Of a stretch of 64,000 nucleotides of DNA, positions 9,198-59,230 are shown piece by piece. This DNA is from Bugula neritina (Eukaryota > Animalia > Bryozoa): assembly GCA_964035545.1 (NCBI GenBank), contig OZ037773.1:9639751-9703750 (forward strand). The letters are read 5' to 3'. Every line of letters starts with the position of its first letter. Position 1 is the stretch's first letter. The position numbers and the translations under genes are program-made. The notes under the pieces were generated by a model, which was not told the origin of the DNA, did not search any database, and saw nothing but the letters and a program-made list of their open reading frames with translations.

Positions 9198-12100
9198 ATG
9201 AATATTAAAATGTTTTATTTATTTATGGGATTATTCCTTTTGTTTCGTAAGAGTTTACAAAACCTTCAGAGCTCTACTTGGCACCAGAAACATAATAATG
9301 GTATGGCAGACACATGTGTAGGCAGGAGTATAGCAGATGCTGCTTTATAGTTTGTTTTGTGCTGATTATCGAATCACATTTAAACCAATAATATGTGTTT
9401 GATCAAATTGGTATTAATGCCAAGATGAGTGTGAATACACTACTAGTGCACGGGTAAAAGACAGCTTAATAATAGCCATCAAATTGAATTGTCTAAAATA
9501 AGATTCTGTAGATTTTTTTAAGGAAATAATATTTTTGGCAACAGTCTTAAACATTATTTCTTGCAGGATTGTAGAGAGAGCAAAAATATAAAATGAGTAT
9601 TTTTCATTATACATAAATGTGGTGACAGTTTATTGCTGGTCATTATTTTGACTCTTCAAAATGTCACAGTCAAAGTAATAACTGCTCTGCTGCTGCATAA
9701 AAACAAAGATTTGATTGGTTACAAGGCTATGAATTGACCAATGTCAAACATTGACACATCCATAATCTGTAAACAGATTTTCTATACAAAAGCTCATTTT
9801 CTTCTTTAATATTATGCTAAGTAATACATTTCTACCCCTGCAATGGCTGCAATTAATAGCATCACTAAAGTAACTTAAAGTGAAATGCTTTAAAAACTTT
9901 GACAGTAAACAATGTAAACAGAGACTAATACAAATTTCTGCAGGAGGAAGTAGAAAAGAGACTAAGAAACACCAGGTGGTTGGAGCATTGATGTTTGAAG
10001 TGCATCCCATAAAGTCAGGAGGTGGTATTAGCAAAAGAAGTGCAACGCAATATATCAGAAGATGTAAGCTACATTCCAAATAATTATACACTAGTATTGC
10101 TGTCCTTTTACAATTTTTACTCTGTAAACTAATTGATTCAGAACAATGATGATGTCTGTTTGGTTGTTTGAAATTAAAGATAAATGAACATTATAAAAGG
10201 TATTTTCTTGTAAATATTATTTTCCCTGATATTATATTTATTGGTTACCAAAAATTAGTTTTAATGAGTTTGTATTCATGTAGCTTTTTATGCATGTCTA
10301 CTGGCATGTCATACCCATGATGAAACAATTTTCACTGGGAAACACAAACTGTTTGTATGTTACTCAAAGTGGTAATAAATAATAACATGCTGTTATATTA
10401 AGAAAAAGAAATTTCAAAGCACCAACTTTTGCACACGGTTTATAATATTATTATATCAAAGTTGTAAGCCTATAGACTAAATGTCTGAATACATATAACC
10501 AGTGTTTAATAACATGTTTTTCAGTAGCTGAGTCTCCAAGGGATATTGTGATTAAAACTCAGGAAGCACCAAAAGAGAACGAAGCTGAAATCACTTGGAC
10601 TCAGACATACTACTCCTTCATTGAGCTGACTTGCAACCAGCAATGCTGTGGAGAAAACAGATTCTTCAGAGTGAGTCAGTAGATGTTACAATTAATCTGA
10701 AGAGTGCATCAGATTATGTTTGCCAGACAACAACATTTATCTTAATTCATACTCGTTAAACTTTTACATTAATGCTACTTTTACATTTAAAATGCTATTT
10801 CGACTGCTTTCTCCTCAGTAGAAATATGTCATAGCTTTGTATCAAAGATGTTTGATTATCTTGTCAACTAAATAAGCTGGCCTTATAGCTGAGACCAATT
10901 TCTGACAGTTTTGTATAAATAAATTTCAAATAGCTATTTCTATTCATGTTTGAAAACTGCAGCTTCATTGACCTATTTAAAGTTTCTTTTATATGAAAAA
11001 TAGTTAAATTGCGTTGAAAATCAGTCAGTGTTTCCTTTGATGTTATTTGGATAAATCTTATCACATAGACTATCACTATACCAAAGCTATGTAAAAGCTA
11101 TAAGAATTGGCTTTTGCTAGAATAATGCACTGCTCCATTAAATTGATTTGTTGTACTTTTAGCTTGAGTCACCTCCTTTCCTGGTTAAACCCATCAGATC
11201 TGGTGTGAGGTGCTCCTTTAGGTTCCAGTCAGTGCTTGTAGATGAACAAGACTCTTCTCTTGAAAAGTCTAAGCCAACTACCAGTGAATTTTACTCATGT
11301 ATGTATATACAGCTCTGTGATTGGTTGTGTCTGTCCACTCAAGTGTGTATACAGCTCTGTGATTGGCTATATCAGTTTACTCATGTATATGTACAGCTCT
11401 GTGTCAGTTTACTATGGCACATGTGTATCCATGGAGATAATACTTTTAGTATAAATATAATTTTAAAATTATATCATTCATATATATTCCTGTTATTTGT
11501 ATGTTTCGTTAAAAGTATTAAAAGTAACAAGCCTAATACTAAATTAGATGCATTTTTATTGCTTTTCAATTCAACCAATTGGAAAACTATTCAAATTTAA
11601 AATGTGTTTTTTAACAAGTAAATACTATTTAGCATTTTGTAAAAACCTATAGAAATGATTTCACCTGAAATTTTTTAGTTTTCGGCAAATGCTTAATAAT
11701 ATTATTCAAGATTACGCAATTATTTTTCATTCTGAAACATTATATAATATGATGTGGCAGGGGAAACATATTATATCTTTTTCTGATAAGAATAACATCA
11801 AGCATTAACGTCATTGCTTTCTAATGCAAAGACAAAGTATTACAGCAAAGTCACTTTATCAATTTTGTCTCTAGCTACTACTTGCGTGTTTACTCTTTTG
11901 CAAAATAAAAATAAGGATAAAAATATATTTCACACCACAAAAACTTTTTCTAACGTAAGCTACACCTACCCTTATAGGTTTACCATGCAATAGTGCAGTG
12001 AAGTGTTAATGCATTTGGGTTTATTTCCAGATCCATCAAAGCTGTCTAAGCTTGAAATTTTGTACAGATACCATGAGAGTGACGGGAGCTCAGCATTCGA

Positions 12101-14955
12101 GGTGAGAGCTCAGTGGTACGACATCAATGGAGATATTGACCATGTTGTTAGCAAAGTTTACCTTGTAATAAACAATAAAGAGAAGATGTATCTCACAGAG
12201 TATACAAGTTATGTTAATGGTACGTATAGCAAACTGATTCTTTGCTATTTTTGAATTTGAAATTATTCTTTGCTTGTATTTTTGATGATTATTTTATTTA
12301 TAATATATTATATTTATTTATTTTACATATTTTTTATTTTAATGAATTTCTTATACTATAACCTAATTATAAGGATTCTAGCTTTTTTACATAAATATTT
12401 TTGCTATTTTTAATAATGATTTTCGTGATATAATATTATCCTTTAATACTAGTCAATTTTAAAACAGTGCTGTCATAAGAATTCACCAGTTTTTACATGT
12501 TTGCTATTTTATTACCTTTTAGACAAGAGCAATAGGTATGTGGTGAAGCGTCACAAGATTATTGACCATTCAATTATAAGACCAGGATATCTTTATGAGT
12601 TTCATGCCAAATCTTTTGGACTCGGAGGTTTATCTTCACCAGCAACAATCTCTTCTGTAATTATACGTAAGTTAGAAGTAGTTTTTGGCTAGAATTCTAG
12701 GTTGAATTTTTTTCTATCACTAATTTGAAATTAAATCTTTATTTTCAAAAGAAAATGATTCAGAAAATTGATGCAATGATTGGGATAATTAAAACAAACT
12801 TAAAATATAAACCTCAAGATTGTAAAAATAAAATTCATGTCCTTCTAGAGTGTTTTTGTAACATATAAATCAATTTATTTAAATTTAAAGTATTAAAATA
12901 AAAAGGTTCCTTACTAAAAATAAATGGGCTTAATTTCATATGATTGGTTTCTGTTTTGAATAATTAAACTCAGCACCAGTTCACATAACTCATGTATTTC
13001 TGATTTAACAGCCCCCGCCGCTCCTCAAAACTTCACACTGACATCACATCCTGCGTACCCAGTTAAAGAATTCAGCTGGATTTACATTGAAAAAGGTCGT
13101 CAAGATCTGGTAGTGATTAGAATTTGTCTGAAGAACGATGTTCAAACTTGTGTATTTGAAAAGAACTTTACTAAAGACCTTCCCGTGAGGTACATCGTCA
13201 GAGAGCGCCTGGCTAATAGAGATTACTTGGCATATGCGTTCTCATTTTCACAAGGTCAGCGGAGCATCGACAGCAACATGGTCTCTTTTAAATCAGGTAA
13301 CAAAAGAATAGTTGGTTTGAAAGTAGACAAAACTTTAAGTTGATGAATATTTTAGTTATGATAGGCAGGACTTGCTATAGTAAGATAGCAAAAAATATGT
13401 TCCATCCTCTGGAGCATATTCTCATAACTAGTTTTAGTAATATTAATTGTAGCTTTTATTCTAGCTATAATATATAATAATAGTGTTGTTTTTTGAAATT
13501 ATGTAACTGTTAGTCACACTGATTGTAGCTATATATGTAATTAATTTAATAGTAACCATCTAATTAGTATTTGTTATAAGTGTGGTATTATTTATTGTTT
13601 TTTTTGTAATAAATAGAAGTATTGAATGTAACAATATTGATATTTTTTGAAATCCTATCATTGTTTATTATATGTAGCTGTGTTATTTTATATGGCTTAT
13701 TGTACCAATATTATTACTATATAGTAGTATTTATTGCAGCTATATATTAAATAGTATAGTATTTATTTTAATAGTATTTTCATTTGTTGTATAGGTGTTA
13801 GTATTTATTGTTTGTTGAAACAATATTTTCATTAGTATTTCTTGAACAATATTTTCATCATTGGTATTTATTGTAATTGTATAGTTAATATCATTTATTG
13901 TAACTGTATATATAACTTTTCATTATTATTTTTTGTAGCAATATTATTATATTAGGACTTAATGTATGATTTCAGAGACGAAGTACTGCACACACCCCGA
14001 CAACTTGAAGGGACATTTAGTAAATTCAGAAGATTCTTCTCTATTCTTTTTTAAGACCGGTAAAAGATACAAACTCAAATGTAATAAGAATTACATTTTA
14101 GTTCCACTAAAAGACAGAGTAGCAGACTTGACTTGGATTTGCAATAAACAAGGGAATTGGGTGGCGACGTCGACCTGCATGAGTAAGACTCTAGATTCTA
14201 AGGCTTCTCATTCCATTTTTTTCAAATATTTGTTGAACACTTTTGCAGCAAATTCTGCAACACGTTTAGCTAATATGGAAACTTGAGTTTAATTTATTGA
14301 TCTTACACCCTTATATAGAGTAGAAGAGTTCTGCCAGACATACTCTAACTAGCACAGTCACAACTACTCTCTTACACAATCACAAGCTAGATTTACAAGA
14401 TGTAAATCATTACTAACTTTCTTCATTACAATGTAATATGGGTTATAAATTTTAATGAATTGCTGAGAACTAAAGATAAAATCTTTAAGATATAAAATTG
14501 ATTTGAAAAATATAAATTGCAAATACAATCAAACTTTATAATGCTTTTAAAGATAACTCATTGCAGCTCTTGAATTGAAGTTTAGTCGTTATTTAATAAA
14601 TTCATGTTTTATTTCTATTCTAACAGAATCAACTAGTTTTATTTTACTGATCACATTTGGTGCCATATCAGGAGGAATTATGGTTGCTCTGGTGCTAAGC
14701 TATCTTATATATAGGTTGGTTATTTATAATAAAATTATTCTAAGTTAAAAGAACTATACTCAACATTTTATTATAATGTAAGTATATATATTTGTTTCTT
14801 TCAGTTGCAAAAATATGTTGGATAGGAAAAAAGCAACTGCAACTGAATTATTCATTGCTGAAAGACGAATAAAAAGAACTCTTAGCAAACCAAGCAGAAG
14901 AAGTGTTCTTGCAATAACAAAAAAATATTCTTTATTGGAAAACAGACTATATTGA
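9198..14955 (+). CDS. Receptor A: short divergent paralogue (putative signal peptide, partial FN3, 3 FN3, CCP, TM, tail), ~522 aa; exons 9198-9300(?), 9944-10063(?), 10525-10670, 11163-11298, 12031-12219, 12523-12666, 13012-13296, 13976-14182, 14627-14714, 14805-14955
   Basis: Exons from 10525 on are open, in phase and align one-to-one with exons 12-19 of B-E (e.g. PPAAPQNFTLTSHPAYPVKEFSW vs PKPPQNFRLISHPALSKRTFGW). TM FILLITFGAISGGIMVALVLSYLIY; tail ...KKYSLLENRLY*. The first two exons are tentative. Confidence 0.7.
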
Positions 14956-16565: not shown

Positions 16566-19500
16566 ATGAATATAATCAGTCTACTTCTATGTCTATCAGT
16601 TGGAGTCATCAACCTGATACGTCTTAGTGTGCAGAGATATACAGTCACGAAGGCCCTCCTACTTTCAGATGGTGAATAACTATTACTTATATTTAGTATC
16701 ATTGCTTTATATAATCTTTAGTTTAAACAAATTTTTGCTCATTACATTTCTGAGTGAATTACTAGCATATGACTAGCCATAACCTAGTTATAATGTTCTC
16801 TTACGAATGTTTTCTATTTTTAGATGGAATCTATCTTGGACCTCATTTTGAAATAATCGACAATGTAAAAACAGGAAAAACGAAACTAAGATTTAGATGC
16901 AGGATTTATAACGTTTTGGGTGGAGTGAACACTCTTGTGTTTTTCCCCAATTACCCTGATTTGTGGGACTATAGTGAGTAACTGCATTGTCTGTTGATTG
17001 AGTTACCAATTTTAATTTTTCAAGCTTTGAGGCTTTTTTGTTGTTTATAAAAGAAGCAATAAGACTCAGACAATAAGACGCAGACAATAAAACGCAGACA
17101 ATAAGACGCAGACAATAAAACTTTTATATCCGCTCTTAGCAAGTCATTATATATAATTTTTTGAAAGAACAGTTTTAAATGCAGATGAAACTTTGAGATT
17201 TTGTCAACCGGATGTCTGGTTTTCAAGGATCATAAACCTCTGAAACAATAAAAAAATGTTATGTTTATATAAACAATGTGAGTTACACTCTCAGCTTGAA
17301 GACTTAGTACAGTGATGGCAAACCATTTTCTTGCAAGGAAATATTTACAATTCTGTTTCAATTAATATACTTTTTATCTATTGAGGATGTACAGCTACAA
17401 TTTACAGCCTGCTGTAAAAACTTTGATTACATTTTTTAAAATCCTACTTCATTTGCTTAACAATTTTATCAAAAGCTCAATCAATTGTAGGGTAGAATGG
17501 GCAGCCTAGTTATTGAGCCAATTTTTTTTTTCTGAGCATTATAAGACTTGTAGAACTTTTCTTGTCAATCTAAAAACCAGCACCATGAAAGTCAGTCATA
17601 TGTGGCTGTCTTTGTCTATCAAAACTAAATGCATGTGTAATTTATACTCACTAAGATATGGAAAACCTATTGAACTAAACCTATTTCTCATATCGATCTA
17701 GCTAAAATAGATCTGAGATAAATTCCTGAAAACCAGTGAATATTTCAAAAATAGTAGCCATTACTGCAGCTGCATGTTAATCTATCACAAGCAAATGTGA
17801 TGTGATAAAACTGTTTTGCAAAAAAAGTAACAATGTTTTACCTCTTTAAATGCAGTATACTATTTGGAAACAGAGTTGTGAGATTGTTCCATTGTTACAG
17901 GGAAACCACCTGTTCATATACTATCTAGTGAAAACTGTGAGAGAGTAGGCAGAGTCTTTATCGTTTGTGAAAATATTCTTGGAGAAATGACATTTAAGTC
18001 TAAAGACATGGCAGGATATTACGGCTGTCTTTTGGCACGCTCCCAAAATCTCCCAGTCTACTTCATCGACGGAGGTAAGCACTTACAAGTTTTTGTGTAG
18101 CCTGAGTTGAATAACAAGTCTGTGTTAAAGTAACTAGAACTACGTAAACTCAAACCTTATACTTTTGTTTGCCTGCAAACATATTATAGACCTGTGTATG
18201 CTTGGTAACCTACTGTTACCTCAGAGTTGTTGTTTCAGAATTGTTATTCAGTACTGATTTCTGGAAATTGATTGTTTAAAAATCATAAGCAAGTAACTAT
18301 AAGCTAAAGAGATCACATAAAAGCATTCAATATCTGATAGTACAATTGTATTCTTTAGATAATCCAATAACGTATGCAAACGAATCTAAAGAACAAAGAA
18401 GCAGCCAATATGGAGATCGTGTTTCTTTAACAGCTACACTCAATGTGTACCCTGAAAACCTGGCAGCTGGAAAAGTGAAAGCTACTTGGTAGGTGTTTGA
18501 ACTCATTAAGTAGAAAGTCTACGACCTGGTATAAAGAAATGTTAGGTTACCTTCTATGCTGGAGGCATCTAAAGTTATTACATTATCATATTTAGATAAA
18601 CAGCTTACGCATTCTTGCAATATCTCTCTGTGTTATTAGTAGTTACCTGTTCACATTTATCTAGAATTCAGTAATTCAGTTAAAGTATATCTATCCATTT
18701 TTTTATTGTCATTTATTTTAGGTTCAAATATACAGGTAGGACTAAGAAAGTAAGAATTGGCCAAGCTGTAACTACGATTATTGTTCAAAGAGGAAGAGAA
18801 TCGGTCCTTCAGTTTAATAAATTTAGCATAATAAAGATTGGTGGAAGATACATCTGTCAAATGAGATTCACTGAGTCAAATCAAACCTACACAACTGGAG
18901 ATATGTTGGTGAAAGGTATGTCTTTGTAAACGTATAATAACTTTGAAGCTAATGCTCAGCTGTTTGATCTTATAAATCACTAATGCCTATTGTAGCAACA
19001 CCAAAGGCTTGGATAAGAAATGACAGATCTGCTGAGTTTACTTTTGCCCGAGATGAAACAGTGACATTCAAGTGTCTCTCGCAAACCCACCCTTATCCGT
19101 ACAGCATACAGATGAGCATCATAATTGATCTCGCTGTCTTGGATTTTTCAAAGGCCTTTGACGTTGTGTCGCACCATAAACTACAGGTTAAACTGCTAAA
19201 TATCGGAATAGCTGATAAAACTGTCAAATGGATTTTTTCATGGCTTCAGAACCGTCTTCTTTCAGTCTGTGTCAACAACGTCAAATCGGCCACTAGACAT
19301 GTGACCTCAGGAGTGCCCCAAGGCAGTGTATTAGGACCATTGTTATTTAATGTGTACATAAATGACATGCACTCTGCGGTAGCCAACAGCAAGCTTAAAC
19401 TATATGCAGATGATTCCTTGTTGTACAAACCAATCACAACACCTGCTGATTCTAGTTTATTTCAGAATGACTTAGACCATCTTATAACTTGGGCAGACAG

Positions 19501-22500
19501 TTCTCAGATGAAGTTCAATATAAATAAATGTGAGCATATGACAATTCAACGCTCCACTGTAAATCCCCTAGTGTCTCAATACAGCATGAATAATGACCCC
19601 TTACAATGTGTTGACAAAGTATTATACCTTGGTGTCACGATTGATAATAAACTGTCATTCGATCAACATATAATAAACATTTGCTCAAAAGCTAATAAAT
19701 TATTACACATGCTGATGCGCTGTCTAAAAAAGGCTAAAAGTAAAACCAGAGCCATAGCTTATAAAACAGTCTGTCGCCCTATACTAGAATTTGCGACCCA
19801 CACCTGGTCTCCATTTAAATTGAAAAACATCAACATCATAGAAGGTATAAATAGAAAAGCCTTCAGGTGGACATTCTGTAAGAGAAAACGAAATCATATA
19901 ACTGAGCTCATGACAAATTCTAATTGGGATAGCCTTGCACAAAGACGTGACAATGCAGACCAAAAAATGTACTTTCGTATGCTTTCTGGTAGTGCCGCTA
20001 TAGACCAAGACCGGTTCTCCCTTCATTTTGCAGAGTCTCACAATACCAGACATGGTGCTATTAAGGGCAATATCAATACCAAAACTGCCAAACATTCATA
20101 TAAACATCGCATCCATAAACTTTTCTAATGATTCTAGCTGCTTTGCCTAACTGATTATAAGCACTTAACACCGACTCTGCTTTATATCATCTGAAGCTGT
20201 GCGGTGTATATCTATTTATTTATTTACTTTTTTTTTTTTTTTTCTCTTTCTTTTTTTCTTTCTCTCCTGGCAGTAGCTAGCTATTGAGCTTTGAATCGAA
20301 GCATAATTAACTATATTCTTATCTCGTAGACAAAATAGTTTTCTTCCTTACTACTGATAATCTAAACAATTGTTCATACACCACTGCATCTCGATAAAGG
20401 AGCCAAAGCGCTCCGAGTGAGATTAATTAGATGAGATGAGATGAATAATTCAAGATGACTTTGGCAATAATGAGACTTTGCAAGTTGATGAGAGCTGGAT
20501 AAAAGAAACAGAGATTACCAGAAATAATGTTGATTTTCATTACCAAGTAGTAAAAATAATTAACATTCAAAGTAAGATTGCTGGAATAACATCTATAATT
20601 CTATTGATGGGATCTTCTTCTCTAGATATGTTTATCAGTTCTTAGTACTCCTTATCTTCAAGCTTTGGTGTCTGTCTTTATACCAAAACAGAAGCTGTTT
20701 ATGTCACAGATGTGTTCATTTACGTATAAAAAGTTAGTTGCTTGAAACACTCTTCCTCAATAGATGCATGCATCTTTTCATGTTTCCTTCTTACATCGAA
20801 TATTCTTTGGGTATTTCATTTTGCCGGCAGTTTAAGAGCACATTCAGTCAATCACCTATACTCACACCCGTAGCAATTATTTACACGTAATCATAAGGTT
20901 TATGTTACAGATGTATTTATTAATGACTTGGGATGGATTGAGTGTAGAGTAAACTTTCCATCACCAACTCCACTCATTGTGACTGAAAAAGTGACTATAA
21001 GAAGAGATGTCACTCTACCACCACCTAGTAATTTATATTTTATTTACATATTTACATTTATTATAGTTTCCTAAAAATGCCTTTTATTTATTGGCTTTCT
21101 ATATTTTTTAGAACTATAAACAAGCTGTAGATCATAGATTTTGATTTTTCAAAGGAAGCTAAATAAACTGCTTAATTTTGGGAAGCAACCAATGTCCTAT
21201 ACTCAAGGGAAGTTAGATTTACCAACTTTTTATCTTGTAATATTTTTAGTAAAGTGCTTTCCATTACGACCTATACCGCACAGCAAAGGAGGAGAATATT
21301 GCTCTTCAAAGAAGCGTAGACCTGGCTTCTCATGCACAATTGAGTGTTTTCCTGGGTTTGAGCTGATGAGCCCGAGTCCAGAGGTCAAGTGTGGCTGGGA
21401 AGGTAAATGGATTCCTAGCGAAGATTCAATTTCATGTGAACGTAAGTAAGCTAAGTTGTAATTACAGGATACCTTGTTTTTGCTACTAAGTCTGAGTCTG
21501 AGCTAATAAGGGTGTTCTTAATATAATTACTTTAAAATACTGATATATCACACTGTATGTGACGTTTGAAAATTTTCAGTGGTTCAACAGCAGTTACATA
21601 ATGGCACAGCTCTGTTCTTTATTGAAACAATTTATTTTTCCGATGCATTAAAACAGTTAGAGTGCAGCCTTAAAACTTTATATGTATTAAACTTGTTAAA
21701 TTTAAAAAACAATTGTTCAGCTGGCTAAATGAAGTGTTCATTTACAGCATTTGGTTTAACTTATATTCTTTATTTGTCCATTGATATGTTGACCATTACA
21801 GGTGTCAAGTGTGGGCCATTAAAGCCGGTTGATAATGGCAAGTTCACGGTTAGTGCTTGCAGTCAAAAGCCCATAGAGTTGGGAGGAGTTTGTAGTGTCG
21901 AGTGTAACACTGGTTATACACATGCACCAGAGTTTACTGGCTATCTTTGTAACTCTAACAGACAATGGACTCCTGATCCTACCCTTACTCTATGCAGGCG
22001 TGAGTATATAGATGGATAATCAATGTAGTAAATATATTAACTATGCTATGCATTTGTAGATTAAAGATGTAATATAGTGTATGGTATATGGTGAGCAAGT
22101 TTTTTTATTATATGGTCATATAGCATAATCTATGGTTTTGCTAGTGTGTGCATTCACATATTGCAGCTGTAACACACTGTACTGGTTTATTGGAGAACAT
22201 ACACACAATGTGCTAGCATATAATGTACTAGTGTAAAAGAGTGCGTGTACATTTATATGTGTATTATAGCTGTAGCATGGGGTAGTGTAGTGTAAGTTGT
22301 TGAACATGGACATATTGTATAGCTGTAACATATTTTAGTGTAATGAAGTGCTTGTATGTATGTATATATTGCAGCTGTAACGTGTGCTGGTGTACTTCCA
22401 CCTATTCTTGGGCATGGACGATATGATAGCCATAAATGTCAAGATCCAGCACTATTCAGAGAGTATGGAGATAATTGCAATGTAATCTGTAACCAAGGCT

Positions 22501-28184: not shown

Positions 28185-28351
28185 ACCTTCTCCTACATGA
28201 TATGCTCATCAAGAGAAGTTTTCCAAATAGTCTGAGATGCTGCACCAGCAGTTAATCTGAGTCCAGTGTCTGCATATTCCTTCACATAGGTTATGGTGTA
28301 CAGATCTTCCACATCACCATCTTTATTACTTGCCTGGTACTGGAACCTCTA
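28185..28351 (-). pseudogene. Orphan exon fragment of a CTHRC1-C-domain gene (copy 1)
   Basis: Minus strand reads RFQYQASNKDGDVEDLYTITYVKEYADTGLRLTA, nearly identical to the exon at 62160-62370 (RFHYWASNKDGDVEDLFTITYVKEYADTGLRLTA); retains a splice donor; ends in a stop. Confidence 0.85.
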
Positions 28352-30341
28352 TGCTACACTAATTGAAAACATGCAATATCCTAGCATTGCAATTTAACAA
28401 AAATAAAAGAAAGCTTGCAGAAAATTTTAAAGCAATGATACAATACCGGTGCAAAGGCAAAATATGCTGTGCTTTAATTAGGCTCTAACAAGGTATTGTT
28501 GACTGAAAGAAGTTCATTATGCTTTAACAATATCTTTGTTTTGAATTAATTTAAAGCGTGCTATTGTATTGCAGAATATAGTTATTCAGTTAAAAAAGCT
28601 GGAGGATATTATAACAGAATAGAGAAGAGAAGTTTGATTATAGATATAGATAGAAGACAGAATGAATATAATCAGTCTACTTTTATGTCTATCAGTTGGA
28701 TTCATCAACCAGATACACCTTAGTGTGCAGAAACCTTTGAGCACCAGATCAGCGCTATTTGTTGGTAAATAATTAAATATTTTATTTTACTTATTTACAT
28801 TGATGATTTCATTATTTTCAATTTGACTCATGCGTCAGCAAATAACTAATATACAACTTGTGCATCGTTTACTTGGAGTACAGAGACCATCTAATTTCAA
28901 TTATCAGTGTTATTGTCTTTGGTCAGAATTGTTTATGAAAAATATTTTAAGGTAATGAGCACATTGGACCTTACTTTGAAGTAGCTGAAAACATTATGAC
29001 AGGAAAAACAAAACTGCAATATACCTGCAGAGGGGAGCACCGTAATAATCTTATATGAGGAACAAACACTCCGATTTTTTTTACTAATTACCCTAACCTG
29101 GAGTCCTATGGTGAGTCAAGAAAGTTTTAGTGTATTGAATAAACAAAATGGAATACTCTTCTATTAATCGTGTATGCAGTTAAAATATTTTTTCAAACAA
29201 TAAAGTACTGTTGCCATTTTAATTAATGCTTGGCTCGCAAACAGACTTGTGAGAGAATTTCGTTGTTACAGAGGTACTAAAAACTAGAATATTAGCTCGT
29301 GAAAAATGTAAGAAAAGAGGTGTACATATTGAAACATGTTTAATTATTTCTGGAGAGACATATGGTCGGTTTACTAAAGACATGGCTGGGCATTATGCGT
29401 GCGCATTGAACCCACACGAAAATCTGCCTATCTACTTCATAGATGAAGGTACACTCTTATATATCTTCTACTACCTTTTCTCTGCTAACACTTATATATC
29501 TTTGTGTAGTCTGAGTTAAATGCAAACAGTATTTTACAGTAACATGGGATCACAGAGACTGTGAAAACTGGCTGTCTTGTAACCGTTCATCTGCTAACAA
29601 ATTGTAAAACTGTGTATACTTAATAGCTTACTATATTACCTCAGTGTTCTTGTTTCAGACTTTTACTCAGTACTAATTTTTTAAAAATGATTTTGAAAAT
29701 GCAAGTACATTCACCAGCTAAGAGTATATTTGTATTTTCTGATAGATAATCCAATATTACGTTCAAACAAGGCGACTGTAAGAAAAGATGGATATAGAGA
29801 AATTGCTTATATAACAGCTACATTAAATGCGTACCCAAAATATCTGTTAGCAGGAAAGGTACAAGCTACTTGGTAAGTGTTTGAACTGCGTATATACAGG
29901 ACTGTTCTATGAATAAATACATAATAAGGTTTCAGGCTACTAAATATGTTTGAAATGGATGTGATAGCTCGTATTTTAATTTCAATGTTCTTACGTATTC
30001 TTAAAACTTCCTTCTGTTTTACGAGTACTTAACTGCTGAAGATATTTTGAAAATTTACCTACCCAGTTCAGAAACATCCCAATTTTTCACATCTTATGGC
30101 TGTCAATCATTTTAGGTACAAATTTATAAATTCAACAGAAAAACAGGTAATCCGACAATCTGCCATTGTAAGTTTTGTTACTAAAGAAGGGAAATCTACT
30201 CTTCAGTTTGATGCTTTTAACATAATTAGAGTTGGTGGGAACTACATCTGTGAAATGACTTTCACTGAAACAGAAGAAACTTACACAAGTGGAACCATGT
30301 TGGTGAGAGGTCTGTATTTAGTTTTATTTCAAATGTATAGG

Positions 30342-30446
<105 letters not shown>

Positions 30447-39393: not shown

Positions 39394-48401
<9,008 letters not shown>

Positions 48402-48636: not shown

Positions 48637-48740
48637 AGTCTTAGCCTGAGTCCAGTGTCTGCATACTCCTTCACATAAGTTATGATGAACAGATCTGTTA
48701 CATCATCATCTTTGTTACTTGCTCAGTCATGGAATCTCTA
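48637..48740 (-). pseudogene. Orphan CTHRC1-C exon fragment (copy 3)
   Basis: CTGAGTCCAGTGTCTGCATACTCCTTCACATAAGTTATGATGAACAGATCT...ATGGAATCTCT matches 62229-62322. Confidence 0.85.
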
Positions 48741-49040: not shown

Positions 49041-52000
49041 ATGAATATAATCAGTCTACTTTTATGTCTATCAGTTGGAATCATCAACCAGATACACCTT
49101 AGTGTGCACAGACCTTTGAGCACCAGATCAGCGCTATTTGTTGGTAAATAATTAAATATTTTATTTTACTTATTTACATTGATGCAGAGACCTGTGGGCA
49201 CGGAGGCAGCACTCTTTCTTGGTAAACACTTATTATTTTTATTTTATCTATTTATTTTAATAAGTTTATTATTCTTGTTTGAATACATTCTCAATCATCC
49301 AATGGCTAACATACAGTTAACTGCTCACAGTATATTTTGAGTAAAGGCCTGGCCACACACTCGTGAGAACCACACAAAATTGTCTATTTGACACGAAAAC
49401 CCAAAATTACGATCAATTTTGAGGGAATTCATTTATAAACAGTGGACGAAAAATCGAAATTAATGATAAGCACCATTTGATTGGCCAATAGAATTTTAGC
49501 AACAGTAATTATTTTATTTCTACCATGATTCTGTGTCTAGCAATTTCCTGCTGTTTGTATTTGGTACAAGACGCATTCAGCGACTATTTTTTATGTGTTT
49601 CCTCCGACGAACGTGTGACTGGTCATAAAGAGAAGATAACTCATCACAATACTTACACAAATTTTGTCTGATTCTTACGAGTTTGTAGCCAGGCCTTAAA
49701 ATTCTAGCTGTAGAGTGTTTATGTTAGAGTTTGCTTGTCAGTTCAGTCATATAACCAAACGCAGCTGGAAGCTTTAGTACTTGCTAAAGCTCGTCAGTAG
49801 CTTTTTAACATCTGATTGTCTTTCAACACAATCTACCTTAAATTATTAATGTTACTGCCCTTGAATGTAGTTGTATATGAAACATTTATATTTTAAGAGT
49901 TCGAGCCTATTGGACCATACTTTGAAGTAGCGGAAAACGTTATGACAAGAAAAACAAAACTACAATATACCTGCAGAGGGGAGCATCATGATAGGCTTAA
50001 ACTAAGAATAAACACGTTGATTTTCTTCACCGAGTACCCTAACTTGGAGTACTACGGTGAGTGAGTAAAACTTTAGTTTATTGAATAAACATAATTTTGA
50101 AACAACAAGGCTTTTTATTACAGAACAAAAACATAATTTATTTACCTAGAATGGTGTAAATTTGTGAAAACCAATCCATAAGTGACAGATTTGTGAGAAA
50201 TGATGAAAATACAAAAGTGTAAATCTTTCTATAAAATTATGGATACTCCCAGCTATAGTAAGAAATTTTCTTTCAATAAAGTATTTCTCAATAATTCTAT
50301 TTTAATGCTTTTATTTACTAAAAAAATATTTGCAAGAGCCTGTTGTATTGAGTTTGATTACATTTGATAAATTCCCTCTTACACATTATATACTATATTT
50401 ATTATTGTACTTTGCTTTACCATGTTATTTGCTATATATGTATAACATTGTATTATTTATAATATTTTGATGACAGATTTTATGCATCTGACAATAGGAA
50501 GGCACATGTCTACTGGTTTTGCCCCTACCTGAATAAAAAACTATTTCAAGTGGCATTATTTTTGAATAGGGTTTAGAGATGTAAATATGTATAGATATAT
50601 GAAGATATGTAGATATGTAGATACGTAGATATGTTGATATGTGTAAATATATGAAGATATGTAAATATTCATTAAACTAGCACATACTGCAGCTAACTAA
50701 CAACATGTTTGTCAAAAATAGACTCATCTTCTATCAGCTGTGTGTACAATTATAGTAGCTATTAGCTTTTTTAAAACAAAAAGTAGAGTTGCTCTTTCAA
50801 ATGTGAAAAAACTTAATTGTTACAGAGCAGTTTCCCACTAGAATATTAGCTCGTGAAACATGTAAGAAAGGAGGTGTACGCTTTGAAACATGTTTAGTTA
50901 TTTCTGGAGAGACGTATGGTCGGTTTACTAAAGACATGGCTGGGCATTATGCATGCGCTTTAAACCCATACGAAAATCTGCCCATCTACTTCATAGATGA
51001 AGGTAGACTCTTATATATCTTCTATACTACCTTTTCTCTGCTAACATAATATTGTAAACCTATACTATAGATAACCTACTATTACTTTAGAGTTCATGTT
51101 TCAAATTTTTACTCAGTACTAATTTTTGAAAGACAATTGTTAAAAAGCAAATACATTTATCTGCAGAGATTACATACAAACATTCACTATGCCTGATAAA
51201 AGTTACCTTTTTTTAGATGAACCAGTATTATATACAAAAGAAGCTATTATAAAGAAAGGTGGATACCAGGAAGTTGCTTATATAACAGCTACACTAAATG
51301 TGTACCCCAAAGATGCTATAGCTGGAAAGGTACAAGCTATTTGGTAAGTTTTTGAACTGATTACATAACAACTCCATGACTAAGTATATTACATAAAGAG
51401 AGTAGGGCTAATTAATATGTTGGGAATAGATGTAGCTGCTACACTATTTCATTTTGATAGAGTTAAAATGCACTTCTACGATGTATTTTTGGTTCAATAG
51501 TATTTGACTGTTGAATATATTTTGAACATTTAATTGTCCAGTTCAGATAAATCCTGATTTTTTCATTCTATAACTGTCAATAATTTTAGGTACAAACTTA
51601 CAAGTGCAACAGAAAAGCAGATAGTCCGACAATCTGCTATTGCAACTTCCGTTACCAAAGAAGCAAAATCAATTCTTCAGTTTGATGCCTATTACATAAT
51701 TAGAGTTGGTGGGAACTACATATGTGAAATGACATTCACTGAAACAGAAGAAACTTACACGAGTGGAACCATGTTGGTGAAAGGTCTGTATTTATTTTAA
51801 AATGTATAGGCTGTATATATATGCAGTTTAAATAGCAAGTATATATAATGTTTATACAAATAATGATAATAATATTAGCACTAAATATGAATGATAATTT
51901 GTTAACAATTTGTAACATTTCTACTCACAGTCTTTCTAAATATAAGCTCTCTCAAGTTGAACTTGAATCGCAGCTACTTTTTCTTTGAAAAAAAGTTGAA

Positions 52001-55000
52001 AAACTAATGCCTATTGCAGCCACACCAAAAGCTTGGATAGCGAATGACAAATCTGCTGAGTTTCAGTTTGCCCGAGATGAATCAGTGATATTCACATGCA
52101 ATTCTAAAACCTACCCTTATCCGTACAGCATACAAATGAGCATCATAATTCAAGATGATTTTGGCAATAATGAGACTTTGCCAGTTGATGAGAGCTGGAT
52201 ATTAAAAAGAGATATTACCAGTAATGATGTTGATACCCACTACCAAGCAGTAAAAATCTCAAACATGCAAGGTAAGGTCGCTGGAAAAACATTTCCCAAT
52301 ACATGTATCGTTTCATGTTTTCTTCTCTTTTCTACTTTTCTTTTATTTCACAGTTTATTTGCAAACACACACCCACACACACAACACAAACACACGCTCA
52401 CACACTCACACACACAACACACACACTCAAACTCACAGGCACACAGGCATGCACTCACACACTCATACTAACATCCACAGCAATTCTTTACACATAATAA
52501 TAAGGCTTATGTTACAGATGTATTTATAAGTGATTTTGGATGGATTGCGTGTAGAGTAAACTTTCAATCACCAACTCCACTCATTGTGGCTATACCAGTG
52601 AATGTTAGGAGAGATCTCACACTACCACCACCTAGTAATTTATATTCTTCTAATAAATTTGCTTCCTTCATTTTGTATAGATTCATGTGAATAAAATGCA
52701 AATTAAACTATTGCCATGTAATTAAACTACAAAGCTCATTAAAACCCAGGTCATATACTATAATTATTTGCTTTGGTCACCAACTTCTTATTTTACAATA
52801 TTTTTAGTAAAGTGCTTTCCATTAGCACCTATTCCACACAGCAAAGGAGGAGAATATTGCTCTTCCAAGAGTCGTAGACCTGAATTCTCTTGCACAATTG
52901 AGTGTTTTCCTGGGTTTGAGCTAGTCGGCCCAAGTCCAGTAATCAAGTGTGGCTGGGACGGTGAATGGTTCCCAATTGATGTTTCGTGTGATCGTAAGGG
53001 TTTTTGAAAATGTAAAATACTATCTTTTTGTTGCAAGAGTTCTCTTGTACAATAATTAAATATTTAATATGACTCTGATTCCTTAAGAAATTGTAGGTAA
53101 GTTTTATTTGACAACATATAAATATTTACATGCAGTTTTTTTCTAGCCTCCCAAATTCACATTAGAAAAATTTATGCATTGTGGAATTAGAACAGTTGAT
53201 GTTCTTCTATAGTTACTAAATGTTTTATTTCATGCTTAGGGCTTAAATTTATTATATAATTGAAAAACATAAAATAATAATTCATCTTTTGCTATTACTT
53301 TATAGCTAATTAGTTGAAAACTGATGTTTGAAATCTTGTTTAGGTATAAAGTGTAGCCCACTAATAAAGTTTTCGGATGGCCAGTTCACAAATAGAGATT
53401 GCACCAGGAAGTCTATAGAGCTGGGCGGAGTTTGTAGTGTCAAGTGTAACCCTGGTTATACACATGCACCAGAACTTACTGGCTACACTTGTACTGCTAA
53501 TAAACAGTGGGTTCCAGATCCTTATTCAACTCTTTGCAAACGTGAGTGTATATTTCAGTAAACAGTAGAGTGTTTATAGGGAGTATAATATACTATGACC
53601 TATGTGTATGTTATATAGTTTTATTGGAGATGTGTATATCACTGCTGTAGTATGTGCATGGGTATATTATAGCTGCAGCATAGGGTATGTATAGTGCATA
53701 TTGTTGCAAATGTGAATTAGATTACATTTGTCACATATAATAGCTAGTGTAATGAAGTGCTTGTACATGTATAATATGTATATATCACAGCTGTAACGTG
53801 TGCTGGTGTACTTCCACCTATTCTTGGGCATGGACGGTATGATAGCCATAAATGTCAAGATCCAGCACTATTCAGAGAGTATGGAGATCAATGCAATGTA
53901 ATCTGTAACCAAGGCTACTTCTTAGCCAAGAAAATATGGTACACTTGCATAGATTCTGGAAATTGGTCAAATAAAAAAAGAAAGTCACAATGCACTTGTA
54001 AGTAATTCTCCCATTTTTATGATACAAAGCAAACAAGCCTAAACATTTTTTTTTAGGTTTTTAGCTAAATACTTTAGTAATCTGCTCAATTCTATGCTTA
54101 CAATATAATGTTCACTACTGATTCAAACATTTCCCTTGGTGCTGCAAAAGCTGTTTTTATTTTGGCAACAATTTGTTTACCAAAAATCAATTTATTTAAC
54201 ACTCATAAGGAAGCCAGGCTTTGTAATAAATATAATACATCTACTTGTTTTAAAAATAAATAAAAATCTCAGTAGAATTTTTTGAAAAAAATGTGATAAA
54301 TATGTATGATGTTTTGTTTACTTGCATGCATGTTGTTAGGTATGTGACTTGACATTGCTTACTTATATTACAAATATGTATTGTGTCACTTTTGAAGCAG
54401 TATGTATATGCATTTTTTTAGTAAATGCAGTAAATTTTACAAGCCTGGATATTTTACCAAACAATGAAGGAGTGTTACTAGAATTTGACCTCTCAGATTC
54501 ACCACCAGTAAACCTAAACACTGACGTAATAAGAGTTTTATTATGTAAAATCTATGGAAACCGAGCATGCAAAGAAAGACGGTTTCCTATTGCAAGCAAA
54601 ATCAAGCAACTTGAACTCAGAGAAGACTTTTTAGTTGGGGATTGGGAATTTACTTTACGTTTCATCAGAAATCGACTTGACATCAGTAAAGACAGTGTAA
54701 CAAAGGGCATCAAACGGTGTAAGTAGTATTTTATTTTTCACCTATCTCGGCTTTGTCCTGCAGTTCCAATAGTGGTAAATAGTGTACCATAATTAGTATA
54801 ATAACTGTAAATGATTCAAACAAACATCTGCATGATTACTTTGGTGAGCTGGTTATAGCGTTTGCTGACTAACCTGAAATCTTGGGTTTTGGTCTTCATG
54901 AAGGAAAACATATTTTGTAGAAAGAACTATTTTAAACTCCAGTTAGTTTTACAGAGACTGTTCATTTTTGATACCTGAATAAATTTTTTTAGGATGAAAA

Positions 55001-58000
55001 TTGTTATTATCAAGGGATAATTTAAAGTAAGCAAATCAGTTAATAATAATAACTAGTAAGTCAATACAATCACCATTTCAGATCCTCTGGCTCCAAAAGA
55101 TGTCGAGATTCTGGTTCAACCTCCTCCCAAGGAACATGAAATCACGATCAGATGGACACCAACGTTTTACTCATTTGTTGAAATTTCCTGCAACAGAATC
55201 TGCTGTGGCATATACCACATATTCACGGTACAAGTTAACATACAAAGAAGTAGTAGTTACAATAGTCAGACAAAGTTATCAGCAAGGTCATTGAAGTGTT
55301 TTTCTCATTACAGCTGGACACGCCACCGTTTGTACTAGAAGATGTTAGGTCTGGTACCAAGTGCATATTCAAAATGAGATCTGTGTATTCTGAAGACCCT
55401 GATTACGCAATAAGTTCCACACAGCTTGTGAAAGAAGTACATACGTGTAAGTTCCTACATCTGCTAAAGTGTAAAATACATCTTATAAAAATATCTTTTG
55501 GGTGGTTGTCAGAAAGAGAAAAAAAATCTGTTGGTTTTTACGTTGGTCTGGCTAACTTACTCTCGGAAGTTACAATGTCAAAGCACGCATGCAGTTAAAA
55601 TCTCACAACATGCAAGGTTAATTCAATCCAAAAAATATCTTTCTTCTCGCTGATACAGCAAATGTGAATCCCCAAAAAGTCTTTCCTAGAATCTTCTAGA
55701 AGTGGATTTGTATAAACTTAATATATTTGAAAAAATTATTTTGAATAAAATTTGCTTGTATATATTGTAAGCAAACCATTGATTACTGATCAAGAATAAT
55801 AAATAAATATAAAATTGCATTAAATTATATACCTATAAACTCTAAAAATAAATTTCGCATTAAAATGTTTTGATTATAAACAACTATTAAAGGTTAACTA
55901 TTTTCAATAGGCAAAAGTTTATGCAATTATGCCTAAATAGTTTATAGCTATAGTTGACTTCAATTTAATTAAAAATAACTTGCATGCTATTTTACATCTA
56001 TAAATCTATACCAAAGCAAATGAAATTAGTATGATGTTAAAAAAATAGTTTATTTATAGATCCTTCGCAGCTAAGGAAAGTTAACGCAGTATTCGAAGAT
56101 GGAAATAAAGACATTGGTTTTAGTATTAACATTCACGCTGTGTTGAACCTTGTTAAAGGAGATCTTGAGAAAATTGTGCTTTATGTGGTTATCAACAAAA
56201 ACTTTGGTGAAAAAATTAAACTGGAAAAGGAGACAGTAAATATTACAGGTAAAGCCAAAACCTCCAAAAATAAAGCATCTAGACATTTTATGAACTTTGT
56301 TGAACATGCTGTATGGAATGGTTTGACAAACGCATTTAGTCTGCTTTACTATCAACAAACATTATTGTTTTGAGAAATGCTGAATTATGAAATATTTCTA
56401 AATCTATAACAGACGGTAAAAGATTTTATAATATACTAAACTGTCTTGCTAGCTGAAGATCGCCAGAATAGAAAGTTGTTCACTAATTATGAAGTACCAC
56501 CCCAATTTGTAACACATGGAGCTCTTTATGAGATTTATGGACAGGCCCTTGGATCTACTGGTTTACTATCACCTCCAATAAATACATCAATTGTTCTATG
56601 TGAGTCATTGTACATATTAGATGCGATCTACCTGTAAACTGTGTTTTAATTTTATTAAAGGCTCAGTGCAGTTTGTCTTGTTGCATATACTTGTAGTGCA
56701 AATTAAACAGCAGTTGATAGATAGGTTTTTTGAGTGTAACAAAGATATATCTGTGATACATAAATCTAAACAAATGCGTTGCAAAATCTTAATCAGTAGC
56801 AATAGTAGGTTTACAAGAATTATTTTATTTGTTTATGTTTTGTAGCCTTTTTATGTTCTAGTATCTTTTTATGTGTAAACACCAACAATTAAATTGAAAG
56901 AATGCAAATGCATTTAAAGTCAGTGGAAGTGAACTTCTTGCATGCTAGATCTGTAAGACCTTCCTGATAAGATAATGCGGCCACAATAAAATAGCTCAAC
57001 ATTACTACTGCAGTAATACTAGCTGACTAGCATACTGGAGAAAATATTCAAATATATATTTGATAATATTATTTAGATCCTAAGCCTCCTCAAAACTTCA
57101 GACTGATTTCTCACCCAGCGCTGAGTAAGAGAACGTTTGGCTGGTCATACGCTGAGAACAGTATACAAGATTCTGTTGTGATACTGGTTTGTACGAAAGA
57201 GAACATTCAATTCTGCCTGGTTGAAAAAAAGTATGTTGGAGAACTTCCTGTACAACATACAACGGAACAACGACTAGCTGATGGTGAATACTCAGCCTAC
57301 GCATACTCAACCTCTAGAGGAGTGGACAGTGGTTACAGTAATGTAATCTACTTCATAGCAGGTATGTGGAGTCATGCAACATATGTGTACACAGTAAGTT
57401 GGGAATTTCCATTTATTGTGTAATATATTTAGTAACATGGCTTCACAATTTATGACGTATCATAGTAATAAACCATCTTTTTTATATTAAAAACTTATAG
57501 ATTTGTATGTATTCCTTTTTCATCTTTGACTGTAACAATTACTATAATATTATAGTTAGATATATAAATTGAATAAAACAAAACTATGCAAAGGTCAACT
57601 TTGATTGCGCTGTAGCAACATTGAAATAAAACTCGCAAAATTTTGACATCTCTCTTCCTTTCAAAGATATAAACTCAGAAGTCATAGAAAGTTCATGTGC
57701 ATGCATGAATGTATAACTATAAGTAGATGTGATTTTTTTTTAAAAAGATAATCACGCAATTTTTATAATTGCTATCCCTGTAAGAATCCACGAAAGCAAA
57801 GGGCTTATGCTAAGGCGGGCTAAGGACTTATTTAAGTTAGGTGCAAGAGCAATTGTGACAGAATGCTTTTCCTAACATCACCAACGGACTTTTTCAGAGC
57901 TCAAACACATGACTTTGTTTTTATTTGGCAAACACCCTAACTCCAGACCACAGCTGCTTCTATTTTTACTCTGTAAAAAACTTTATTATTTCAGATAACA

Positions 58001-59230
58001 GCTATTGTCAACACCTGGATGACCTCAATGGTCACATAGTGACACCAAACAACAAAAAACAGTTTTTCTTCGAACCTGGGAGTGGATACAAATTGGAATG
58101 CAATCCCCGCCACGTATTGGTCCCGTTGAAAAATGTGTCTGGAGAATTAACGTGGAACTGTACGGAGAAGGGAGAGTGGATTCCCACGTCAGCATGCATA
58201 GGTACTACAAGATATATATACGCACTAGCCATGCAATTGCGATATCTAGATCTGTTTTTATAAATTAAGCTTACTACATTTTAAACAGTATTTTAATTAC
58301 AATTAGGCTAACAAAAATATTACACTTGGAAGCATGTCTGAATTTTTTAGTTCAGAAGTCAGGCTTTTAACCAAAAACTGGTAAAATTTAACCAAAACTG
58401 GTAAAATACTAATATTTCAAATAAATTCTTACAGCAAAGACCAGCAACATACATATGCTAAGTATTTGATACTGTCGAATTTAAATAAAAAATAGAAAAA
58501 TCCTTGTCTCATTTTGGCAAATTAAATTTAATTTGTATTAATGCTAAAACAGATGGATAATTGTTAATCGAATCTTAATTTAATTTTATTCATTTATGTT
58601 GAGAATTAAGAAATGATAGCAATAATTATTTGACATGGTAGAGAAACAAACTCAACATGTATATTCATAGATCACTGACATGTCAGTATGACTTTTTGTC
58701 ACAAATATTTTTTGAAACTGTTTGAAACAACTTATTTCAGCATATACCAATGTGGCAAGGATCATTATCATTTTGGCTGCAATAAATGGACCGATAACAC
58801 TGATTATAGCTGCTGTTTATCTCATATTTAGGTAAGTACTCATGTATGTATAATATATATTATAAAATAAGTTTGCTATTGGTATACACCAACACTTGTA
58901 CAGCTTGTGTGTGTGTGGAGGTGTGTGTATGTGTGTGTGTGTGCAAGTGTGCGTGTGTGTGTATACAGTATATATGCATGTATGTTATAATATATGATTT
59001 GTTTTAGGTACCGTAAATGGCGAGCAACCACACAAGCATTAGAATTGGAAGAAAGAGCCCGACAGAGAAGAGTGACCTCCGTCATCCATAGTGCCTCCAC
59101 AATGAAAGCTCTTGCTCTCACTAGAAAATATTCACATTTACAGCAAAATACATCCAAAACCACTTTATATACGCAACACCGATTTAATAGATCGTCTAAT
59201 TCTTCAAGAATTCATAACCCAAAATTTTAA
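49041..59230 (+). CDS. Receptor E, apparently intact, ~1145 aa, same 19-exon architecture
   Basis: Exons 49041-49143, 49898-50056, 50826-51002, 51217-51343, 51590-51783, 52020-52271, 52518-52634, 52808-52993, 53344-53541, 53791-53997, 54422-54718, 55082-55227, 55314-55446, 56060-56248, 56453-56599, 57077-57361, 57995-58201, 58741-58831, 59008-59230 (3438 nt, open). TM IIIILAAINGPITLIIAAVYLIF; tail ...RKYSHL...NPKF*. Confidence 0.85.
49345..49696. mobile_element. PIF/Harbinger (Tourist)-like MITE in intron 1 of E
   Basis: TIRs AGGCCTGGCCACACACTCGTGAGAA / TTCTTACGAGTTTGTAGCCAGGCCT with 3-bp TSD TAA (49342-49344, 49697-49699). Confidence 0.85.
58906..58962 (+). repeat. Imperfect (GT)n microsatellite
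   Basis: Direct observation. Confidence 0.9.

Follow-up and report, generated by a model that had tools for sequence, protein, structure and literature searches.

A stretch of 64,000 nucleotides from the genome of the bryozoan Bugula neritina (GenBank assembly GCA_964035545.1, contig OZ037773.1, positions 9,639,751 to 9,703,750 of the forward strand; called the window below, with positions counted from its first letter) carries five related genes, A to E, arranged head-to-tail on the plus strand between 9198 and 59230. The four long copies (B to E) and genes of their type are supported as encoding type I single-pass surface receptors of a lineage-specific family that evolves by birth and death. 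The most likely class for the array is that of immune-type recognition receptors (with a probability of about 0.5): two clusters with at least 16 genes between them, copies that are conversion mosaics, fresh pseudogenes, and a fast-evolving head mounted on a conserved stalk all fit such receptors. An immune or allorecognition role as such is conjecture.

The tandem array and its five copies

Self-comparison of the window (AT-rich animal DNA, ~31% G+C) by blastn yields collinear plus-strand blocks between four units, at offsets of ~9.6-12.1 kb; nucleotide identity is 64-95%, in introns as well as in exons. Gene models were built by hand from open segments and splice-site scoring; copy E was modelled first and its exons were then projected onto the other units. 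Start codons are placed at 9198 (A), 16566 (B), 28662 (C), 39394 (D) and 49041 (E), and the stop codon of E ends at 59230. An earlier note on this DNA had described five copies over this interval, B-E at a period of ~10-12 kb, two of the five intact, two recently disabled and one short; its coordinates, count, period and states are all borne out by the self-comparison and the gene models. The components of the array are:

9198-14955, plus strand: copy A, short and with its frame open (located by tblastn with E; splice sites)
16566-27652, plus strand: copy B, full-length, interrupted by a retrotransposon (exon projection, insert junctions read)
19127-20450, plus strand, sense: 5'-truncated fragment (1324 bp) of a non-long-terminal-repeat retrotransposon (long interspersed element, LINE) inside exon Ig3a of copy B
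28662-38458, plus strand: copy C, a recent pseudogene (exon projection)
39394-48401, plus strand: copy D, intact, 19 exons, 1126 residues (exon projection, open frame)
49041-59230, plus strand: copy E, intact, 19 exons, 1131 residues (full exon model)

All 19 exons of copy E are joined by GT-AG introns, nearly all in phase 1, and GT-AG is kept at all 18 introns in each of the four long copies. B (16566), C (28662) and D (39394) share the signal-peptide exon with E, and the conservation extends over ~100-200 nucleotides upstream of it.

Copy B retains all of its splice sites, and its frame of 1127 residues is open once the LINE insert, its only defect, is ignored. (The fragment is recognized by Pfam RVT_1 with an E value of 3.5e-23 on 18968-20125; its junctions were read against copy E. 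The 6-bp target-site duplication is ATAATT, at 19121-19126 and 20445-20450, and the 3' tail is made of short tandem repeats.) Copy C retains 19 exons and every splice site, and has three in-frame stops: a TGA at 29056-29058 in exon Ig1a (CGA in D), a TGA at 30653-30655 in exon Ig3a (TGG in D and E), and a TAA at 36820-36822 in CCP4, which was made by a 3-nucleotide insertion.

Copy A has a signal-peptide exon of its own, splice sites that are canonical throughout, and an open frame of 465 or 526 residues; tblastn with the E protein finds no Ig1-3 or CCP1-3 exons in it. Its exons, all on the plus strand, are:

9198-9246: signal peptide
9881-10063: possible FN1 remnant
10525-10670 and 11163-11298: FN2
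12031-12219 and 12523-12666: FN3
13012-13296: FN4
13976-14182: CCP4
14627-14714: transmembrane segment
14805-14955: cytoplasmic tail

At the protein level, FN4 of A is 45-46% identical to FN4 of B-E, and FN4 of the genes of a second cluster (on contig C7; see below) is 39-45% identical to the latter. Since A is about as distant as the C7 genes, it is, judged by this divergence, an old neighbour paralogue and not a recent truncation.

Domain composition of the long copies

The exon and domain map of copy E, all on the plus strand, is as follows (Ig, CCP and FN modules are numbered from the N-terminus; FN3 is also the name of the fold):

49041-49101: exon 1, signal peptide, phase-1 donor
49898-50056 and 50826-51002: putative Ig1, two exons
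51217-51343 and 51590-51783: putative Ig2, two exons
52020-52271 and 52518-52634: putative Ig3, two exons
52808-52993: CCP1, single exon, phase 1-1, Pfam Sushi
53344-53541: CCP2, single exon, phase 1-1, Pfam Sushi
53791-53997: CCP3, single exon, phase 1-1, Pfam Sushi
54422-54718: FN1, single exon, predicted FN3-like fold, conserved Cys pair
55082-55227 and 55314-55446: FN2, two exons, putative FN3 type
56060-56248 and 56453-56599: FN3, two exons, putative FN3 type
57077-57361: FN4, single exon, predicted FN3 fold, the most conserved domain of the family
57995-58201: CCP4, membrane-proximal CCP-like exon with the C..C..C..W..C pattern
58741-58831: transmembrane exon, conserved
59008-59230: cytoplasmic exon including the stop codon, a tail of ~75 residues with RRVT and KYSHL

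When Pfam is run on every exon of E, Sushi (PF00084) alone is recognized. CCP1, CCP2 and CCP3 score 24.8, 25.7 and 26.8 bits, all above the cut-off of 20.7, and at the level of the sequence profile are confirmed Sushi/CCP modules; CCP4, at 13.4 bits, falls under the cut-off. There is no fn3 match at an E value of 1 or less, and nothing on the Ig exon halves.

The FN modules were approached through predicted structure. FN4, folded by AlphaFold2 from an alignment of 19 paralogues and fragments, reaches a predicted local distance difference test score (pLDDT) of 94.4, and all matches listed in a Foldseek search of the PDB are of FN3 type (titin Fn3, irisin, CDO/BOC, neogenin, tenascin and cytokine-receptor domains), with TM-scores of 0.64-0.83. 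The FN1 model (pLDDT 79.7) has nearly all FN3-type domains among the matches listed (IL-7Ralpha, TSLPR, EpoR, monobodies), with a best E value of 3.8e-3 and TM-scores of 0.5-0.63. FN4 and FN1 are in this sense, that of the modelled structure, confirmed as FN3 folds. By sequence, the FN4 profile gives a weak match to a gar fibronectin-like protein (HMMER E value 1.3e-9, summed over 9 repeats) and an hhalign probability of 27%, and a PDB sequence-profile search with FN4 gives nothing. The domain order put forward in the earlier note (signal peptide, three Ig, three CCP, four FN3, one CCP, transmembrane segment), for which it had proposed a check by AlphaFold and Foldseek, stands in part: CCP1-3 are recovered by Pfam, and FN1 and FN4 of E, the two modules that were folded, are both of FN3 type; CCP4 is below threshold, FN2 and FN3 are putative FN3-type modules, and the Ig identity of the first three modules is likewise putative.

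These N-terminal modules are probably beta-sandwiches of an Ig-like kind, on the strength of their motifs. Ig1 of E has four cysteines (46, 86, 96 and 117), with a spacing of 71 residues between Cys46 and Cys117, and no tryptophan; Ig2 has one cysteine, in ..GGNYIC.., and the string ITATLNVYP at the position expected for the B-strand cysteine; Ig3 has Cys266 and Cys335 at a spacing of 69 residues. (The want of a tryptophan and the extra Cys pair in Ig1, and the missing first cysteine of Ig2, had already been pointed out, and a residue check of E finds them correct.) F-strand-type motifs are present in all three (KDMAGHYAC in Ig1, ..GGNYIC in Ig2 and ..SDFGWIAC.. in Ig3), each of them preceded by an E-strand-like L/V-x-I/F, and a regular expression for the F-strand motif (D-x-G-x-Y-x-C type) finds 2 in E as against 0.08 expected from shuffles. 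A PDB profile search with Ig2b returns Ig domains as all of its seven best matches (CD47, CADM1), over strands E-F, at non-significant E values of 0.23-1.4; Ig3a returns noise, and Ig1b noise with one ROBO2 row. Three Ig exon halves score below 0.9 throughout in the ESM Atlas, which is uninformative. Finally, hhalign of Ig1-3 with ten I-set exons from this genome gives a probability of ~1%, no better than controls; the same method finds no signal between FN1-3 and 14 gar FN3 repeats, and is therefore insensitive, so that its negative for Ig1-3 carries no weight.

The cytoplasmic tails of A-E are ~55-80 residues long. RRxT is kept in B-E, though their tails otherwise diverge, and K-Y-S-x-L is kept in four of the five copies (A, B, C and E; D has YSNS). 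The former may be a basophilic-kinase site and the latter a YxxPhi/SH2-type site, both being candidates by motif.

Mosaic evolution of the copies

Substitution rates at nonsynonymous (dN) and synonymous (dS) sites were estimated by the method of Nei and Gojobori on a codon alignment of the four long copies, four sequences precluding site tests. The overall dN/dS is 0.33-0.42. By domain, it is 0.32-0.64 for Ig1-2, 0.08-0.33 for FN4, 0.05-0.15 for CCP4 and 0.59-1.12 for the transmembrane exon (31 codons). Among C, D and E, dN is 0.12-0.22 in Ig1-2 as against 0.03-0.06 in FN4.

Synonymous divergence changes abruptly along the genes. Between C and E, dS is 0.38 in Ig1, 0.026 in CCP1, 0.072 in CCP2 and 1.6 in the tail; between B and E, it is 0.036 in CCP3 as against ~1.0 in Ig1. 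The closest pair of copies switches between exons, B being the outlier in Ig1-Ig2 (59-70% nucleotide identity to C, D and E) and E the outlier among the four long copies in exon FN3a, the transmembrane exon and the tail. These sharp swings of dS and the changing closest pair imply that the copies are mosaics, generated, as far as the alignments speak to it, by gene conversion or unequal crossover. The dN/dS of C equals that of the intact copies, which implies that its inactivation is recent.

A contig of 4611 nucleotides from JGI metagenome sample 3300002729 aligns collinearly, with 80-86% of nucleotides identical, to the 3' end of B and on into the 5' end of C; at the protein level, its FN4 and that of an array copy are 95% identical. 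Collinearity with the B-to-C junction implies that the tandem arrangement predates this genome; to judge from this contig, the sample includes DNA from a related bryozoan that also carries the array. Birth-and-death turnover, which the earlier note had inferred, is thus seen in its parts (tandem duplication, gene conversion and recent pseudogenisation), and it is the N-terminal domains that evolve fastest.

Family members and taxonomic range

A profile search of the same genome finds 16 FN4-type exons, five in the array and the other eleven between 7.12 and 7.34 Mb of contig C7, and a search with FN1 finds the same two clusters. The Ig3a exon is found in B-E and in one 35%-identical exon on contig C8. 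The relatives outside the window are:

Contig C7, 7118866-7339691, both strands: second cluster, 11 paralogues (FN4 profile)
Contig C8, 10988000-11001000, minus strand: single-pass receptor with an Ig1-Ig2-Ig3-like triad that is 33-35% identical to E

The C7 genes have up to eight or more Pfam-positive Sushi exons ahead of FN1-FN4, CCP4 and a transmembrane exon, and no Ig-like exons. Since Sushi arrays are set there on the same stalk, the stalk (four FN3-type modules, CCP and transmembrane segment) is, on exon content, the family-defining core, and B-E are a subfamily headed by the Ig-like triad and three CCPs. Four of the C7 FN4 exons carry a stop codon, which implies pseudogenes in that cluster too. 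The triad of the C8 receptor is followed by two exons of ~150 residues, a Ser/Thr-rich stretch, a transmembrane segment and a tail with ILYAVV, which fits the consensus of the immunoreceptor tyrosine-based inhibitory motif (ITIM); Pfam is silent on all pieces tested. This reuse on a different stalk indicates, by exon comparison, that the Ig-like triad has moved by exon shuffling.

The taxonomic range was explored with an FN4-exon profile against 1.84 billion representative proteins. There are 14 matches, of which 12 are short fragments of 61-200 residues (the contigs that were checked come from JGI, Logan or ENA assemblies); the other two are a weak generic FN3 match, to the gar fibronectin-like protein, and a weak match (E value 9.3e-4) to a 2024-residue protein of an environmental assembly. 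No annotated full-length relative is found among the 1.84 billion proteins and none from Watersipora, whose RefSeq proteins were in the collections searched; the FN4-profile matches include no cnidarian protein. Scans of metagenome contigs with an Ig3a peptide and an FN4 alignment yield nothing, or only unrelated FN3 domains of 32% identity. A family of at least 16 members that is specific to bugulid bryozoans is supported by these searches. Lineage restriction had been supposed in the earlier note, together with the possibility of further copies and of a full-length ortholog among conserved adhesion proteins: the profile search gives exon-sized fragments from related samples, eleven more copies lie on C7, and no such ortholog is found. 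A literature search found no paper on this family.

Read data and other samples

Four read runs were mapped on 52700-58300 (5601 letters of copy E). The source DNA run covers this segment continuously at a single-copy depth of ~120 and with 0-2 differences; the uniform depth of its E-specific contigs over the segment rules out an assembly artefact as the origin of the copies.

Three runs of other samples with the same organism label yield exon-sized islands only, at 93-97% identity, and nothing over exon FN3a or most introns. That these exon-only-looking runs represent transcripts was considered and rejected: the contigs start in acceptor-side intron bases, continue into unlike sequence, share an intronic deletion of 559 nucleotides and have no GT..AG exon-exon joint, so that they represent DNA, whether from diverged paralogues, alleles or sibling species. 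At several positions the other-sample runs are fixed for a variant that no copy in the source run has. Interpretation of these differences as hyper-polymorphism was rejected as unproven, a single locus being involved and cryptic species being equally possible. (B. neritina is a cryptic species complex.)

What kind of receptor?

If the array encodes immune-type recognition receptors, the variable Ig-like/CCP head would bind a variable extracellular ligand, which might be microbial, opsonin-like or a conspecific cell-surface molecule, while the conserved stalk of four FN3-type modules and a CCP would keep the head clear of the membrane. Binding would be passed on by the tail, ~70 residues in the long copies, through RRxT and KYSxL, either by phosphorylation or by AP-2-mediated uptake. 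The repertoire would turn over by tandem duplication, gene conversion between paralogues, and loss through point mutation or retrotransposon insertion.

Several considerations weigh against this assignment. No domain has a dN/dS consistently above 1, so that diversifying selection is unsupported, and a gradient of constraint combined with tandem turnover is also found in non-immune adhesion families. Two of the four long copies are dead, and the subfamily could be decaying. A motif search of A-E finds no ITIM, no immunoreceptor tyrosine-based activation motif (ITAM) and no NPxY in the tails, and no WSxWS in any copy. The Ig fold is argued from motifs and from matches at an E value of 0.23, Pfam, Atlas and hhalign being silent or below threshold. 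No RNA run that contains the stretch was found; the runs mapped were DNA.

Ordinary adhesion or morphogenesis receptors, engaged in zooid budding, neuromuscular wiring or epithelial contact and diverging at the N-terminus through subfunctionalisation, would be an unlikely though respectable alternative. Adhesion molecules classically combine an ectodomain of Ig-like and FN3 modules with a short tail, all of the domains here are under net purifying selection (dN/dS 0.05-0.64), and the tails are devoid of immune signalling motifs. Developmental adhesion molecules are, however, usually conserved, and no ortholog of these genes is detected beyond close relatives; nor do recent inactivation of half of the long copies, widespread conversion and the 11 further genes of the other cluster sit well with such a role.

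It is rather improbable that the genes encode receptors or regulators of a complement-like system, whose CCPs would bind C3 or another thioester-type opsonin and so clear targets or shield self tissue. CCP is the one ectodomain module that Pfam recognizes, the C7 relatives are long CCP arrays on a transmembrane anchor, and tandem clustering is also a property of RCA genes; but B-E have only 3+1 CCPs among 11 modules, and a sequence relationship to RCA proteins was not seen, though no search was aimed at it.

Rather long odds also apply to the proposal that the array specifies allorecognition or kin recognition of the colony or larva, by allele-specific and perhaps homophilic binding of the N-terminal domains. 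The earlier note had raised tests of fusion and rejection in case the organism was colonial, and the host, a bryozoan, does form colonies; larvae of B. neritina are reported to settle in a kin-biased manner (Keough 1984, cited in PMC10078279), and the layout resembles that of Hydractinia Alr (PMC9546547). Two other samples hold no copy that is at least 93% like E in introns or exon FN3a, a difference that could equally reflect cryptic species; positive selection is not seen, and the tails have neither ITAM nor ITIM. The bolder version, in which the array and its 11-gene sister cluster constitute a bryozoan kin-recognition or histocompatibility locus, invented independently from Ig-like, CCP and FN3 modules, is a speculation of still lower probability. 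If it were true, the absence of E-like haplotypes elsewhere would represent extreme haplotype diversity together with presence/absence variation.

That the cluster is decaying and without function, D, E and A having open frames just because these have yet to be broken, would account for the two disabled long copies and for the failure to find an RNA run, but is very improbable in view of a dN/dS well under 1 (down to 0.05-0.15 in CCP4), GT-AG at all 18 introns of the four long copies, conserved tail motifs, and an FN4 whose protein matches a copy from another sample at 95% identity, as against no more than 80-86% for the DNA around it.

Comparison with known receptor systems

The Alr genes of Hydractinia encode tandem single-pass receptors with atypical Ig-like domains, and include pseudogenes and recent duplicates (PMC9546547). 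Likenesses to the array are a colonial host, a tandem cluster, N-terminal beta-sandwich domains (putative in the array) that Pfam misses, and an FN3-like membrane-proximal part. Alr proteins differ in having 1-3 Ig domains, no CCP and, in many of them, an ITAM or ITIM, whereas the array genes have four CCPs, four FN3-type modules and no ITAM/ITIM. Moreover, the Ig fold has been shown for Alr and is putative, from sequence, in the array, and a role in allorecognition has been proven genetically for Alr1/2 and is conjecture for the array. The FN4-profile matches reveal no sequence kinship to Alr, and the array genes are to be regarded as an analogue of the Alr family rather than a member.

Vertebrate CCP receptors of the RCA and selectin types (CR1, CR2, CD46, CD55) are likewise type I membrane proteins with CCP ectodomains, encoded in tandem clusters. 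RCA proteins consist almost only of CCPs, whereas the bryozoan family has an obligatory stalk of four FN3-type modules and a CCP, to which B-E add three Ig-like modules; with four CCPs among the 11 ectodomain modules of B-E and no homology past the generic Sushi domain, the array genes fall outside RCA.

The fester and uncle fester proteins of Botryllus are surface proteins with a Sushi/SCR domain, linked to a polymorphic locus; their role was shown by knock-down and polymorphism data. They share with the array genes the Sushi-bearing surface protein and the colonial invertebrate host, but have a different architecture, no FN3 stalk, and are not homologous.

Ig-FN3 adhesion and guidance receptors (LAR-type RPTPs, DCC/neogenin, Dscam, contactins) also have N-terminal Ig-type domains (putative in the array), several FN3 domains and one transmembrane segment, and the FN4 model superposes on FN3 domains of neogenin, DCC, contactin and PTP-delta (Foldseek). 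They differ in being conserved across phyla, with I-set domains that Pfam detects, no CCPs between Ig and FN3, and long conserved cytoplasmic domains. A likeness to class I cytokine receptors resides in FN1, which has a conserved Cys pair and whose best structural matches are IL-7Ralpha, TSLPR and EpoR. These matches are weak, and the array copies are without WSxWS and without box1/box2 motifs in the tail.

Flanking genes, repeats and other observations

Upstream of the array, a plus-strand gene at 2468-5777 has a RING domain (zf-RING_UBOX, 27 bits), Cys/His-rich B-box-like exons, coiled-coil-like exons and a C-terminal exon of 252 residues. It looks like a TRIM-type E3 ligase by this layout, the RING alone being confirmed. 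Downstream, on the minus strand at 60533-62851, lie exons of a CTHRC1 C-terminal domain (PF25815, best E value 9.5e-12).

The intron between FN4 and CCP4 of copy E contains, at 57749-57935, a very high-copy element (contig depth 6,400-37,000 versus ~120 around it). Its loose ends contain GGTTCRAACCC, which is like a tRNA B-box, and the element is probably a tRNA-derived short interspersed element. A repeat of ~80 nucleotides (28261-28340, 39048-39130 and 48650-48730) precedes each of the start codons of C, D and E by ~350-400 nucleotides. One further occurrence, at 62233-62313, is ~3 kb past the last gene copy, and another is ~10 kb further; the repeat could be a mobile element or promoter remains. 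Long (TA)n and (ACTC/ACAC)-type microsatellites at 30265-30543, 30919-31430, 46010-46330 and 52254-52526, in introns of the Ig3 and FN3-FN4 regions, differ in length among copies and create spurious long open reading frames.

The mitochondrial COX1 gene has in-frame TGA, and AGR and ATA codons where Ser and Met are conserved, as in the invertebrate mitochondrial code. An open frame for nuclear HSP70 has 98% identity to B. neritina protein EB796_001881 and 83% to Watersipora. A nuclear copy of COX1 on contig C6 (11174072-11175412) scores 433 bits versus 435 for the mitochondrial gene (contig C321, 12636-13976) and has the same 9 TGA codons; on this resemblance it is either a recent nuclear insertion of mitochondrial DNA or a mis-joined mitochondrial piece.

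Significance

Bryozoans are a major phylum of colonial animals whose immune receptors are almost unknown, and Bugula is a classic model of symbiosis (with the bryostatin-producing Endobugula). A search for published molecular candidates for self/non-self or kin recognition in bryozoans found none, save for a remark in the report of the B. neritina draft genome, which mentions only 'weak similarities' to Alr1 (PMC7576161). That draft, of a highly heterozygous genome, measures 214 Mb, and k-mers put the size at 221 Mb (PMC7576161); the assembly that holds the array measures 216 Mb.

What is new here is a lineage-specific receptor family, with exact gene models, that numbers at least 16 genes and has a domain order not previously recorded; its fast turnover, seen in gene conversion and in two fresh losses, one by LINE insertion and one by three stops; and, on contig C8, a receptor that reuses the N-terminal three-domain module. 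If the genes are not expressed and polymorphic, the array would represent one more ordinary lineage-specific adhesion family. If they are expressed and polymorphic, they would be candidates for the recognition of microbes, symbionts or kin by Bugula that can be put directly to the test, the first of these being an immune role.

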